Assembly: GCF_964194025.1 (NCBI RefSeq)
Contig: NC_134473.1
Span: 55,738,001-55,802,000 of the forward strand
DNA from: Convolutriloba macropyga
Lineage: Eukaryota
DNA: 64,000 nucleotides
Direction: 5' to 3'
The notes beneath the pieces were generated by a model. The model was given only the letters and a program-made list of their open reading frames with translations. It had not been told where the DNA came from and made no database searches. Shown piece after piece: positions 60,437 through 63,506 of the stretch; position 1 is the stretch's first letter, and every line of letters starts with the position of its first letter. The position numbers and the translations under genes were made by a program.

Positions 60437-61361
60437 CTAATCATGCTCAAAATGATCAACAATAACAAACAGAAAAACTCTGTGAGCAAGATCAATGCGA
60501 AACAGTTTGTTGAGGATATCAGTGATTGAAATTTCTTTTTGGTAGCCGGCATACTCGACTTCAACGAAACTCAAAATTTCAGTTTTTTTCGGTGCAATAT
60601 TTGTGAGAGAACCGCTTGACAACTCGGAAAACGTTGACGAGGCACGTAACTATATCTGACTTTTGGAAAACAACAATTTCTCCATACTGTTGCAGAGCAG
60701 ATTGCATAAAGCTGACGTATGCGTTATTATTAGTAGAATATGTGAGGGAGTCAAGATTGAGCGTACGCAAGGACATCGTAGAAAACAGACTTGGATCATG
60801 TGAGTCGAAATGAATGGGAAGTGCGGTTTCATCAATGACCTTATGTTCCGCGAACACTTTCGTTGAACACCCCAGGCTCTCGGCAAAATCGAACAGGTCA
60901 TCATTTATTAACTCGCTAAGCAGCAACTTTTTCCGCCGAATATATCGCTCTATAATAAGGTCGAGATGATTAACTGTTCCTGTAAACGGTTTGCTCAGCA
61001 TGTTGTTAGCAGACTCGAACATGAACGCTGACGTTGACCACAGCGGACCAAAGTTTCTGACCTGCCAGCATAAATGCGACAAGAAGTGGACATTAATCGT
61101 AAAGCAGTACTCATCGTATTGTGATGCTGTCATATTAAGAAAACGTTCAATATATTTTCCAGCTTTTTCGGTATGCTTTGTGTCTGTTAGGATCAGTCGA
61201 ATGGCGTAGCTCAGACACATAAATCTTTCGTAGCTCTCAGGACAGATGTTGAATTGCAAAAGAACAGGCCCAATATAGAGAAGCCAGTCTTTGCATTCGC
61301 TTGCTTTGAAGTAGGGGAGATCGCAGAGACTTCTCGGGGAGCGTTTAATTTCATGAGGGAC
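60437..61361 (-). CDS. SET-transposase exon 3 (catalytic C-terminal half); one +1 frameshift in an A7 run at 60583-60589
   Basis: TTTGATTAG acceptor; VPHEIKRSPRSL…FKASECKDWLLY, TINVHFLSH, FGPLWSTSAFMFESAN. Removing one A extends the frame to …VDHFEHD*. Confidence 0.85.
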
Positions 61362-61432
61362 CTAATCAAAATTTGATTTAAAAAAAATGGAAAACAACTT
61401 TGCAAATACCACTGAAAAAATAAACAACTTAC

Positions 61433-61894
61433 TTTAAGATTCTTAATGAACCTCTTCAGCTCTTCTTTGCGGGCACCTTTAATTTCTTTTGCAGCCAAAT
61501 CAAGAACTGTTCGTGCAACTCCGAGAGCAATTTGATGCATATAATCTATAGGCATGGATAAAGGCAGATTAGGTATTATTTGGCTGAGAGCGCTCACACC
61601 CTTAACACCTTTCCAGTTCTTCAGCGAAGGATGTTTTTTGATGAACTCAACATTCGCTGTGTATTCACAAACAGTCCTCATTTTTGACCGAACATTCGGA
61701 TAAAAATGCGTTTTTTCATTACGTTGGCCTTCATTGTAACAATAACAGCAGCCAAAATAGCCATTGAAGGAAGTCCAATTGAGAACAGAATAGCGAGCAG
61801 GAGTATCGGCAACAAAAAGAACAGGCTTTAACATCACAGTATAGAACACACCAGAATATTCCAAAGTGGTTGGCTTCAGCTGCTCACTGATTGC
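61433..61894 (-). CDS. SET-transposase exon 2 (154 codons)
   Basis: TTTTATAG acceptor and AAA|GTAAGT donor, flanked by 67-nt and 71-nt phase-0 introns. Motifs ADTPAR, FNGYFGCCYC, GVKGVS, IDYMHQIALGV. Confidence 0.9.
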
Positions 61895-61961
61895 CTATAA
61901 AATGGTATACATAAAAATCCGGGGAAAAAACCACGAAAAAAGCGAGAAGGAAGAAAATTAC

Positions 61962-63506
61962 CTTTAAAAAAGATGTCCAGTGAGGTTTTTCAGTTCCAAA
62001 CCACAGCCCGGCCAAAATTATATTTTTGAAGGCTGATCGTATAATCGGGGGTAAATTTGCAATCGCTATCCAGACAGGCCACAATGAATTGTTGCGACAC
62101 TGAATAACTTTCATACCGTCTGTATTTATAATTAGGAAGAGGTTGAGTGTTCTGGAACTTTCATCAAAGAAATCAGGAAGAATTAAATCTCTCCCATCTA
62201 TTCGCTGATTACTGTAGTTGACAATGGAACGGATGTTCAGTTTCAGAAGAGTTTCAATCTCTTCAAGGAAATTAAGAACGCACCATTCTCCTCCTTTCGA
62301 TGCTTCAGATTTAACAACTCGCTGACGAGCTACCAGAACGTTTCGCTTTTTGAGTGTTTTGAATGAAGGAATTGAGCTATTCGGATGAGACAAACGAATC
62401 AAGCGCAACCATTCCCCAGCTTCTTTGTCTGACGTTCCGTGTTTCGTTACTATGCTCTCAACACAATGAATGAAATTCTCCACTGAAACTTTTGAAGTAT
62501 TGCTGATTGGTTGATAATTAGAAAAACATTGTTCATCTTCGCTTTCCGATTCACCAGAACTTTTGCATTCAACCTGGCTTCCACATTCAACAATTTGACT
62601 ACACGCAACAGCCGATGAACCAACAGGTGCCGTACTCTCCTCTGTATTTTCGGCTGCAGGTGTTGATGCTTCGCCTTCTTCTTCACTAGTGTCATCACTT
62701 TCGATAATTTCGCCGCTAGGTAGCCTGAGATCAATCCATCTTGCTTTTTTGGGCACTGTTTGTAAATTGCGTTGCTGATACTGCCGCTTGAAGTTTTTCA
62801 ATCTGAATATCTTTTGATTTCCTTTTACAGGCGTATCAGTTGAAATGGGCGAAACATCAACGGAAGTTCGTCGAGCACAAACAACGGGTGTACTGACATC
62901 AACATGCAGATCATCATGGGGGCATTTACATTCCCGATTACCAGGTCCGAAAAAATCAGTCCCATAGAAGGATAACAACTCCGTTCCAGGCAAGATCTCT
63001 TGACGTGTGATAATTTGGACTCCTTTTCTTCCATTAATTTCAACTGCCCTGTAATCACAATTCGGTCTACAACTATGATTGACAAAGCGCGCAGGACCAA
63101 CCATAACACGACTTAACTTCGAGCCTTCTCTTGGAGCCATAACTGATAAATTTGAGAACGCAATTTCGTCTTTTTCTGGAATTTTTTCAAGATATCCTAT
63201 TAACGCAACCAAATGACTTCTAGCAAGTGTCTTCTCTCCTTCGTAGAACAAACCATATCCGTGATAATTATCTGGTTTTATTTGACAGCATTCTACTTTC
63301 ATTTGATGATAAGCCTTCTGCAACAAATTATGAGTCTTTTTAACTGAGGAATTCGAGTTCTTCAAATCATCAAAATCGTCTTCCGATATCAACTCAACAA
63401 ACGTTTTGAGTTCCGGATCCGAAAAACCAAAACTTCGACAAATTTGGCCATCAACTTGACATAACAGATTGTGTTTTTCAGTTTTATTTAAAAAAGTGAA
63501 ACTCAT
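61962..63506 (-). CDS. SET-transposase exon 1: Suv4-20-like SET domain (~62916-63260), acidic linker, transposase N-terminal part
   Basis: ATG at 63506 follows a TTTCAG acceptor. SET motifs GYGLF, LSVM, GPARFVNHSCRPNC, ILPGTELLSFYGTDFFG…CKCPH. Transposase motifs INTDG…SLWPV…NLPP…NIILAGLWFG..KP. AAG|GTAATT donor. Confidence 0.9.

Follow-up and report, generated by a model that had tools for sequence, protein, structure and literature searches.

The window, by which we mean the whole 64,000-nt stretch of DNA analysed here, carries on its minus strand a gene of three exons (63506-61962, 61894-61433 and 61361-60579), which are joined by two GT-AG introns, both in phase 0, and which encode a protein that starts with a SET module, passes through a disordered acidic linker and continues as a DDE transposase (Table 1). 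The ORF listing gives minus-strand reading frames at 61884..63659, 61211..61864 and 60579..61259, and the splice sites lie at 61961/60 (GT) and 61896/95 (AG) for intron 1 and at 61432/31 (GT) and 61363/62 (AG) for intron 2.

Table 1. Features of the SET-transposase gene and of the element around it, in window coordinates.
Feature	Position	Strand	Remark
3' terminus of the element, CCC at 58107-58109; plus strand reads CCCGAGGTTGCCCGAAC...	58107..58128	-	similarity to L003/L002 stops
Subterminal repeats, four 33-bp units with CCGTACTAAGGCCGTAC and one inverted copy by the terminus	58129..58307	-	
Internal 174-bp satellite array, about 9 units	58465..60091	.	TRF: 58566-60091, 8.7 copies
Conserved transposase C-terminal tail, 48 codons and TAG, ending ...DHFEHD; out of frame here	60437..60583	-	
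Exon 3, 260 codons and premature TGA: H762-x3-H766, catalytic E786 (FESAN)	60579..61361	-	
A7 run with +1 frameshift relative to intact relatives	60583..60589	-	
Intron 2, 71 nt, GT-AG, phase 0	61362..61432	-	L002 has an intron at the same place
Exon 2, 154 codons: second catalytic D545 (ADTPAR), C(2)C motif (CCYC), DYMH	61433..61894	-	
Intron 1, 67 nt, GT-AG, phase 0	61895..61961	-	precisely missing in paralog L002
Exon 1, residues 346-515: conserved helical N-terminal transposase part and first catalytic D463 (NTDG)	61962..62471	-	
Exon 1, residues 201-345: variable Ser/Asp/Glu-rich linker	62472..62906	-	alignment A1
Exon 1, residues 1-200: KMT5/SUV4-20-like module with N-terminal helices, SET core and Cys/His post-SET	62907..63506	-	
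Element sequence 5' of the start codon, running past the window end	63507..64000	-	aligns with L003, L007 and L008, ~99% identity

Intron 1 is a real intron and not a reading device, since precisely its bases are missing from the paralog L002, whose ORF runs uninterrupted across this position with FLK joined directly to AISEQ. Short-read contigs carrying the gene come from runs of unknown kind, no RNA run with the gene having turned up; they show no splicing and follow the genome collinearly. Because the introns are phase-0 GT-AG introns and because intronless relatives exist, some of them with ORFs of 955-1108 aa, we infer that splicing and co-translation of SET module and transposase take place in the intron-bearing lineage.

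As assembled, the spliced frame encodes 929 aa and ends at a stop at 60581-60579. An earlier note, made from the sequence alone, had described the SET exon, the acidic linker and the two phase-0 introns as they are found here, whereas its protein length of about 976 aa did not hold, as that length requires one A less in the A7 run and the stretch 60583-60440 otherwise lies in another frame. In the window copy, a frameshift of 1 nt removes the final 48 conserved residues from the protein. One base less in this run is found in L002 and in the short-read contigs of runs X1, X3 and X5, all of which read into FEHD and the stop, and when translated, the tail agrees with those of L002 and of P0018, an intronless relative, in both of which it is in frame. 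The sibling copy L003 has two bases fewer in the run, so that its frame is shifted too. For another sibling, L008, the third ORF is listed at 260 aa, as would be expected of an ORF that continues into the tail, and this copy is probably intact.

The N-terminal module is SUV4-20/KMT5-like by sequence profile and by fold, in agreement with the resemblance that had been claimed from motifs. On exon 1, the Pfam SET domain (PF00856) reaches 44.8 bits (E 1.9e-11), with the cut-off at 22.4, and every relative with a SET match exceeds this cut-off as well (25.7-47.3 bits); P0044 gave no Pfam match. Searched as a single sequence against the PDB with phmmer, the module finds SUV420H2/H1 best at 4e-12 and NSD1 at 4e-8, and the family profile scores KMT5C at 91 bits (8e-25) and KMT5B at 82 bits, with NSD1 as the next family at 45 bits. 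The sequence profile alone leaves the first 85 residues unaligned, and its matches end at the post-SET. In Foldseek searches of the PDB with the AlphaFold model of the module (pLDDT 87.8), the first 13 matches are all SUV420H1/H2, with 157-230 aligned columns (most 204-230) and TMq values of 0.60-0.68, compared to ~130 columns and 0.41-0.44 for other SET enzymes. This fold match takes in the helical domain that, at the N-terminus, packs against the SET core and is specific to the KMT5 family architecture as defined in PMC10697951.

The SET motifs of the window are G83-Y-G85, N143-H144-S-C146 and a catalytic-type Tyr181. Across 21 family members from the window's genome (alignment A1), R140, N143, H144 and C193 are invariant, and G83, G85 and Y181 nearly so. 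In a wider set (A2) N143, G83 and C193 are still invariant and H144 and G85 are not. Some distant clades carry NSDC in place of NHSC and GYRL or GYKL in place of GYGL; catalysis may therefore not be the shared role of the module. In the post-SET, C193, invariant in both alignments, is accompanied by a nearly invariant C195, and the third position of the Zn-binding KMT5 cluster (CxCxxC) is not a cysteine. Close to it stand His197 and His201, the latter invariant in A1, which might substitute for the missing cysteine. The linker that follows has a pLDDT of ~25 in a full-length model of P0018 and includes, after the post-SET, a basic stretch that is conserved in A1 (N-x-K-R-R-L ... K-K ... E-L-R) and in which Arg261 hardly varies. 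In SUV420H1, a C-terminal segment places arginine anchors on the H2A-H2B acidic patch and is needed on nucleosomes (PMC10697951). This segment is not recognisable in the window protein, where no sequence match extends past the post-SET, and it is a conjecture, made by analogy, that the basic stretch may be homologous or functionally akin to these anchors.

The C-terminal part is a CMC-type transposase (CACTA/EnSpm-Mirage-Chapaev), an assignment made at the level of the superfamily. On exon 1 of the window alone, Pfam matches are weak (Transposase_21 with 15.4 bits, DUF1258 with 25.4 bits) and below cut-off. In the intronless relative P0018, SET, DUF1258 (44.4 vs. 33.1) and Transposase_21 (30.4 vs. 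28.6) all score above the Pfam gathering thresholds within one ORF of 955 aa, which bears out the in-frame fusion to a CMC transposase that had been read from the window. Over exon 1, the window and P0018 share 30% identity. The atlas neighbours are transposases from invertebrates (Arthropoda, Rotifera, Nematoda), a hint and no more that the genome is probably that of an invertebrate animal. All DDE-region motifs listed by the earlier note (TDG, ADTPAR, CCYC, DYMH, HFLSH and FESAN) occur here and are conserved in relatives: D463, D545, C564-x2-C567, H762-x3-H766 and E786 align in 10 out of 10 full-length relatives as well as in P0025, which has no SET module. The transposase core has a RAG1-like fold, matched over about 600 aligned columns (E 1.5e-11).

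Next to the gene, the CCC terminus and the subterminal repeats were found as previously described. Since the terminus reads CCCGAGGTTGCCCGAAC... on the plus strand, the element ends in ...GGG in gene orientation, and the window, L003 and L002 have the common end ...GGGCAACCT(C)GGG with three unrelated flanks. This 3' end, ...CCT(C)GGG in the three copies, corresponds to CCC on the other strand and not to CACTA. The 33-bp units of the subterminal repeats span 58176-58306 (TRF: period 33, 4.0 copies), the inverted copy lies at 58136-58152, and the motif CCGTACTAAGGCCGTAC occurs four times compared to 0.02 occurrences expected by chance; the repeats probably serve as binding sites of the transposase. 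The 174-bp satellite array is also found inside L002 and L003, and its read depth is very high. No more than 5.9 kb of the element, from its 3' side, lie in the window, the 5' part being located beyond 64000, which is why no second terminus is visible in it. In sibling copies, at least 9.6 kb of a 179-bp satellite lie upstream; followed in this direction, the sequence led into 9-10 kb of this satellite, with neither a 5' terminus nor a target-site duplication coming into view. In L001-L003 and L009, no reverse complement of the 3' end is found even when mismatches are tolerated, and blastn-short, used on L001, L002 and L004-L006 to look for inverted repeats on either side of the gene, returned chance-level matches only. 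Among the upstream collinear ORFs of L003, Pfam gives a weak GDSL/SGNH match (E 0.002) below cut-off, and three small upstream ORFs of this copy have no Pfam match.

Within the window's genome, the fusion family comprises 21 clusters with 26-99% identity; the SET module is thus present in other copies, and its absence from them would have refuted the earlier proposal. The same SET-transposase architecture recurs in independent assemblies and in short-read contigs. Of the 150 best representatives, 19 carry the transposase; among these are eight ORFs of full length, about 1000 aa, which stem from several assemblies. In a SET tree that was midpoint-rooted without an outgroup, a 99/96 branch parts all 47 transposase-linked SETs (47/47) from all 24 host-type KMT5-like SETs (24/24), among them P0168, which is KMT5B/C-like at 6e-38. 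The affinity to KMT5 put forward by the earlier note stands, whereas a nesting of the transposase-linked SETs inside the host KMT5 clade is not found. Judged from this tree, the transposon SETs are a KMT5-like but separate and old lineage, and one acquisition event would be consistent with the topology. The capture of the SET domain is old, not recent.

For the window and L002, the NG86 estimates of dN/dS are 0.10 for the SET module, 0.36 for the linker, 0.07-0.09 for the transposase (0.09 for residues 346-515) and 0.20 for the tail, all of them approximate because dS amounts to 1.2-2.5 and is close to saturation. By these estimates, purifying selection on the SET module is as strong as on the transposase, and neutral evolution of the SET part, which would have argued against a functional fusion, is not what is seen.

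From our point of view, it is very likely that the sequence from position 58107 up to 64000 or beyond belongs, as its 3' part, to a large autonomous transposon of the CMC superfamily (CACTA/Mirage/Chapaev-like) with a KMT5-like SET module built into its transposase. One could instead imagine a domesticated host gene comparable to SETMAR that is no longer part of a mobile element, and it would fit this idea that neither a second terminus nor a target-site duplication was seen for the window copy and that no transposition event was observed. We nevertheless regard domestication as very improbable, given sibling copies with 99.1-99.3% identity to the window on other contigs, a 3' flank of L003 that differs from that of the window, a terminus and subterminal repeats common to the copies, intact DDE residues, dozens of diverged fusion lineages within a single assembly, whose 90% clusters comprise 5-41 sequences each, and many copies in decay, as transposons would show. 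These observations agree with the earlier view of a mobile element rather than a single-copy domesticated gene, and near-identical copies at different loci support the reading of the window copy as part of a recently mobile cut-and-paste element. That the in-frame junction is an accident, arising from a chimeric contig or from a recent private capture of a host KMT5 gene, has a vanishingly small probability, and nothing was found in its favour: the recurrence of the architecture in independent assemblies and short-read contigs, and the position of the SETs outside host KMT5, rule it out.

With regard to the function of the SET module, we tentatively propose that an active eukaryotic cut-and-paste transposon family employs an H4K20-type methyltransferase within its own transposase and in cis, either to write the mark or to choose its integration sites according to the state of nucleosomes, a reading to which we give slightly less than an even chance. 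Module and transposase would act jointly on nucleosomes, be it those of the element or those of target sites. Writing H4K20 methylation is the role that we rate as most likely, although it, too, is possible rather than probable. In other systems, H4K20me2 recruits 53BP1 to breaks, and H4K20 methylation marks heterochromatin; a mark at the element's own donor or target nucleosomes could steer break repair or the silencing of the element. A somewhat less likely explanation is that the module serves as a non-catalytic anchor, in which the KMT5 fold, by binding to nucleosomes or the H4 tail, would tether the transposase or direct it to its targets, such as chromatin with H4K20me1 or H2A.Z, with methyl transfer being dispensable. 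It would account for the old, intact clades P0068, P0132 and P0136, which lack the histidine of NHxC and the second glycine of GxG and of which several copies nevertheless retain full-length ORFs; the title of the SUV420H1-nucleosome structure 8T9F speaks of 'Catalytic and non-catalytic mechanisms', and the basic linker stretch with its near-invariant arginine recalls the SUV420H1 anchors (PMC10697951). The clade of the window, however, keeps G83, G85, N143, H144, Y181 and the Cys/His cluster, and the low dN/dS of its SET module likewise speaks against a mere anchor. A methyltransferase with a non-histone substrate, for instance the transposase or a protein of the host's repair or silencing machinery, appears improbable. 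Here one could point to the deep clade that the transposon SETs form apart from host KMT5, to post-SET ligands that differ from those of KMT5 and to the unrecognisable acidic-patch-binding segment, but the complete KMT5-specific architecture of N-domain and SET core has been kept, and no other SET family is near in sequence.

Enzymes modifying chromatin or DNA that are borne by transposons are an emerging theme, from fungal TET/JBP proteins to SET or DNA-methylase cargo in oomycete, red-algal and brown-algal elements. In the present case, a KMT5-like SET module resides inside the transposase of a deep and, as it appears, still mobile family, under selection that by our estimates equals that on the catalytic core. 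This opens the question whether a histone writer or reader is used for target choice, for steering break repair or for managing the element's own silencing, and the clades with and without catalytic motifs offer natural controls for it. If active, the protein would be a compact nucleosome-directed transposase of use to tool builders, and should the proposed use in cis be true, it would represent a natural 'epigenome-editing transposase'.

To our knowledge, the only well-known SET-transposase fusion is SETMAR (Metnase), a domesticated host gene, in which a SET histone-methyltransferase domain likewise precedes a DDE transposase within a single polypeptide. This primate gene is present in one copy and arose when an Hsmar1 mariner was exonised behind an existing gene of the SUV39 type (pre-SET/SET/post-SET). 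In contrast, the fusion described here combines a KMT5/SUV4-20-type SET with a CMC/RAG1-like transposase instead of a mariner, and it belongs to a multi-copy, diversified family that keeps its terminus and subterminal repeats. The best match of the SET module in sequence and fold is to SUV4-20H1/H2 (KMT5B/C) and fungal Set9, which are H4K20 di/tri-methyltransferases (family definition in PMC10697951), from which it differs by its location at the extreme N-terminus of a transposase and by the replaced third post-SET cysteine. With the CMC and Transib/RAG1 relatives, the transposase has the Pfam Transposase_21/DUF1258 match, the RAG1-like core and subterminal repeats in common, whereas the CCC...GGG terminus departs from the usual CACTA or CA..TG, and both the large internal satellites and the SET module at the N-terminus are extra features.

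SET genes on transposons as such are already known. They occur as cargo in HarbingerS, in oomycete MuDR elements and in some Helitrons, and in the red alga Bostrychia a giant element of the EnSpm superfamily carries the Plavaka/EnSpm accessory gene PAG2, which encodes a DNA methylase and a SET domain (PMC12730594; bioRxiv 10.1101/2025.02.11.637652). There, too, a mobile element encodes a SET protein, but as an accessory gene rather than as part of the transposase, and the elements belong to other superfamilies or host groups (Harbinger, MuDR and Helitron; oomycetes and red algae); the passages on them do not state a KMT5-type identity for the SETs. An in-frame fusion of a KMT5-like SET to a CMC transposase was found nowhere described in the full-text literature searched, and within it the novelty suspected earlier holds. 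Other elements also carry factors acting on epigenetic marks, namely the TET/JBP dioxygenases of fungal KDZ/Plavaka and further transposons and the anti-silencing proteins of VANDAL elements (PMC12730594); theirs are separate genes and concern DNA methylation, whereas the module described here is part of the transposase and of a histone-methyltransferase type.

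On the minus strand, the gene is predicted to encode a KMT5/SUV4-20-like SET module, a linker and a CMC transposase. As the earlier note had proposed, the SET domain (Pfam SET, E 1.9e-11; 44.8 bits, cut-off 22.4), the linker and the first part of the transposase (weak Pfam matches to DUF1258 and Transposase_21 at the exon end) all lie in a single uninterrupted first exon, which two short phase-0 GT-AG introns join to the remaining reading frames. Since exactly the 67 bases of intron 1 are missing from the paralogous copy L002, in which the ORF is continuous (FLK followed directly by AISEQ), we regard this intron as genuine. 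Intron presence varies between the transposon lineages: most of them have intron 1 at an identical codon boundary, where their ORF calls stop, and three lack it cleanly (P0002, P0016 and P0018; 21-member alignment A1), while the related proteins P0018, P0132 and P0068 have no introns at all.

As assembled, the predicted spliced product comprises 929 aa, with the main frame ending ...TEKN and a stop at 60581-60579 and the next 48 codons (60583-60440, ending ...DHFEHD and a stop) lying in a different frame. This C-terminal tail is kept even in relatives of ~30% identity (P0018 ends ...EAFEHD). At the A7 run of the window (60583-60589), L002 has one base fewer and reads through into the tail, and contigs of the sequencing runs X1, X3 and X5 likewise have one base fewer; the sibling copy L003, shorter by two bases, is shifted in the opposite direction, and in the sibling L008 the third ORF is listed at 260 aa, the length expected of an intact reading. 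Because the copies differ in the length of this run and the tail is conserved, the window copy carries either slight damage or a homopolymer error. As such, the earlier note's length of ~976 aa and its lower boundary at 60437 stand in part: the tail is conserved and in frame in L002, and the product would have 976 aa with one A fewer, but the frame of the window itself stops at 929 aa.

The kinship of the SET part to Suv4-20/KMT5, claimed from the sequence beforehand, is borne out by sequence, profile and structure searches alike. With phmmer, residues 1-209 matched SUV420H2 and SUV420H1 (KMT5C/B) best among all PDB chains (4e-12), the next family being NSD1 (4e-8), and the gap was wider with a profile of 27 family members (KMT5C 8e-25, 91 bits; KMT5B 82 bits; NSD1 45 bits). 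The AlphaFold model of the module is confident (pLDDT 87.8, pTM 0.83), and all of its first 13 Foldseek matches in the PDB are to SUV420H1/H2, most of them over 204-230 columns with a TMq of 0.60-0.68, whereas other SET enzymes align over ~130 columns at 0.41-0.44. In A1, where identity falls to 26%, R140, N143 and H144 (the NH of NHSC) and C193 are invariant, and G83 and G85 of the GYG motif, Y181 and C195 are nearly so; in the wider 27-member alignment A2, N143, G83 and C193 are still invariant and H144 and G85 are not. The third post-SET cysteine of KMT5 is absent, with His197 and His201 (the latter invariant in A1) close by.

The DDE-region motifs from which a CMC/EnSpm-type transposase had been recognized are likewise conserved when the window protein is aligned with nine full-length relatives that carry the fusion and one that lacks SET: D463 (NTDG), D545 (ADTPAR), C564-x2-C567, DYMH, H762-x3-H766 and E786 (FESAN). 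PMC12730594 gives D/D/E with C(2)C and H(3)H positions as the CMC signature. P0018, a 955-aa protein in one ORF, scores above the curated Pfam thresholds of SET, DUF1258 and Transposase_21 together. In its full-length model (mean pLDDT 76.6), the SET module and the core are confident and linker residues 229-321 are disordered (pLDDT about 25); structure searches with this model returned SUV420H2/H1 again for the N-terminus and RAG1 for the core (~600 columns, E 1.5e-11, TM by target 0.45-0.55).

A private accident of the window copy can be ruled out, as its relatives fall into 21 clusters and the fusion recurs in several assemblies. These clusters, found in a word-indexed search with exon 1 (26-99% identity; 1-41 sequences per 90% cluster), all carry SET and many are also annotated DUF1258 or Transposase_21. 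When 1.84 billion representatives were scanned exhaustively with the SET module (HMMER), 1241 matches were obtained; among the best 150 of these, 19 also carry the transposase. Eight of the 19 are full-length ORFs (982-1108 aa), drawn from two ENA assemblies, one NCBI assembly and Logan contigs. A maximum-likelihood tree was built from 147 SET modules without an outgroup; in it, one branch (ultrafast bootstrap 99, SH-aLRT 96) sets all 47 transposase-linked sequences, together with 44 short N-terminal fragments, apart from all 24 sequences that have their SET internally and lack the transposase, one of which (P0168) is KMT5B/C-like at 6e-38. This comparison with host KMT5, also proposed earlier, rules out a recent capture of a host KMT5 gene. 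Given the separation, the tree is consistent with one old acquisition and long diversification within transposons, provided that the root lies outside the transposon group; no outgroup fixes the direction of transfer.

Between the window copy and L002 (71% amino-acid identity; NG86), dN/dS is 0.10 for the SET module, 0.36 for the linker, 0.07-0.09 for the three transposase segments and 0.20 for the C-terminal tail, ratios that are rough since dS (1.2-2.5, except 0.57 in the short tail) is near saturation. Even so, the SET module stands clearly apart from the linker, arguing against neutral evolution of the module, and both module and transposase are, by these estimates, under constraint. The comparison with the near-identical L003, where changes are very few, gives about 0.4-0.5, in line with copies that drift once inserted.

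Mobility, too, had been read correctly. Similarity between the window, L003 (99%) and L002 (about 70-81%) stops at one common point, ...GGGCAACCTCGGG at 58107 in the window and ...GGGCAACCTGGG in the other two, past which the flanks are unrelated. The subterminal repeats noticed earlier consist of one unit in inverted orientation and four direct ones of 33 bp that contain CCGTACTAAGGCCGTAC (4 occurrences, 0.02 expected). The window holds only the 3' 5.9 kb of the element. Upstream of it the sibling copies, with 99.3% (L008) and 99.1% (L007, on the same contig as L003) gene identity to the window, are collinear across several small ORFs, the first with a weak SGNH/GDSL hydrolase match (E 0.002, below cut-off) and the others without a Pfam match at E 0.1. 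Farther upstream, sibling and paralogous copies carry 9-10 kb of a 179-bp satellite, in which the walk ended before a 5' terminus or target-site duplication was found. From the 3' part, the upstream ORFs and this satellite we put the element at more than 23 kb.

Features of the window and of related loci (window positions unless a locus is named)
Feature	Position	Strand	Remarks
Transposase gene ORFs	61884..63659, 61211..61864, 60579..61259	minus	joined through two short introns
Intron 1	61961-61895	minus	67 nt, GT-AG, phase 0
Intron 2	61432-61362	minus	71 nt, GT-AG, phase 0
174-bp satellite	58465-60091		inward of subterminal repeats, then transposase gene
Small upstream ORFs	L003 2946-3521, 7701-8096, 8299-8661, 8762-9190		collinear between L003 and L002 lineages
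179-bp satellite	L007 1-9628; L008 1-9628; L009 1-9000; L002 5-652		upstream of SGNH-like ORF; orientation in L002 opposite to L003
Broken Ty3/gypsy-type pol	31777-33691	minus	RVT_1, RNase H, integrase core in three adjoining ORFs
1365-aa ORF	49007-53104	minus	no Pfam match, low language-model recognition
189-aa ORF	20073-20642		weak CCHC zinc-knuckle match; probably a gag remnant
Assembly gap, 246 N	18327-18572		close to 189-aa ORF

The 174-bp unit seems to rank as a major satellite in this genome and possibly spread from or with the transposon: in summed word depth, a measure distinct from copy number, it exceeds the neighbouring gene by a factor of thousands (about 375,000 vs 39 in X1, 2.4 million vs 513 in X3). 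Short contigs (143-402 nt) of runs X5 and X6, labelled as two other organisms (B and C), fall within 60179-62880 and differ from the gene by up to 7 letters, most by 0-3, and could reflect sibling species, mislabelling, contamination or horizontal transfer. The 1365-aa ORF, located where the GC content of the window is highest (42-47% vs about 34%), may represent a disordered protein of the host or else an element gene of unknown kind.

With KMT5-like module, flexible linker and CMC transposase on one polypeptide, the SET module would act on nucleosomes beside the transposase. We tentatively favour methylation of H4K20 by the module. Elsewhere, H4K20me2 brings 53BP1 to double-strand breaks and H4K20me3 is a mark of heterochromatin (PMC10697951); such a mark, written where the element excises or inserts, could bias the repair or the element's own chromatin state.

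It is rather doubtful, from our point of view, that the SET fold instead binds the H4 tail or nucleosome and thereby tethers or targets the transposase. This reading draws on the basic stretch after the post-SET region, conserved in A1 with a near-invariant Arg261, and on the distant fusion clades P0068, P0132, P0136, P0069 and P0044 (loci L005 and L006), in which NSDC, NNDC or NSSC replaces NHSC and, in the first three, GYRL, GYKL or GYRM additionally stands in place of GYGL; several copies there still keep full-length ORFs, and their SET modules may be non-catalytic. Methylation of a non-histone substrate we hold to be quite improbable.

Overall, the SET-transposase family is real and interesting, the window copy carrying a late frameshift, and a KMT5-type SET joined in frame to a CMC transposase was not described in the full-text literature that we searched, a search whose scope did not extend to Repbase and Dfam. 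SETMAR has the same domain order but differs in being a domesticated single-copy gene, its transposase of mariner type and its SET of another class. Epigenetic accessory genes in giant EnSpm and KDZ elements are under active study. SET genes are reported to travel as cargo in HarbingerS, oomycete MuDR and Helitrons, and SET is part of the accessory gene PAG2 in giant Plavaka/EnSpm elements of a red alga (PMC12730594; bioRxiv 10.1101/2025.02.11.637652), whereas here it resides in the transposase itself.
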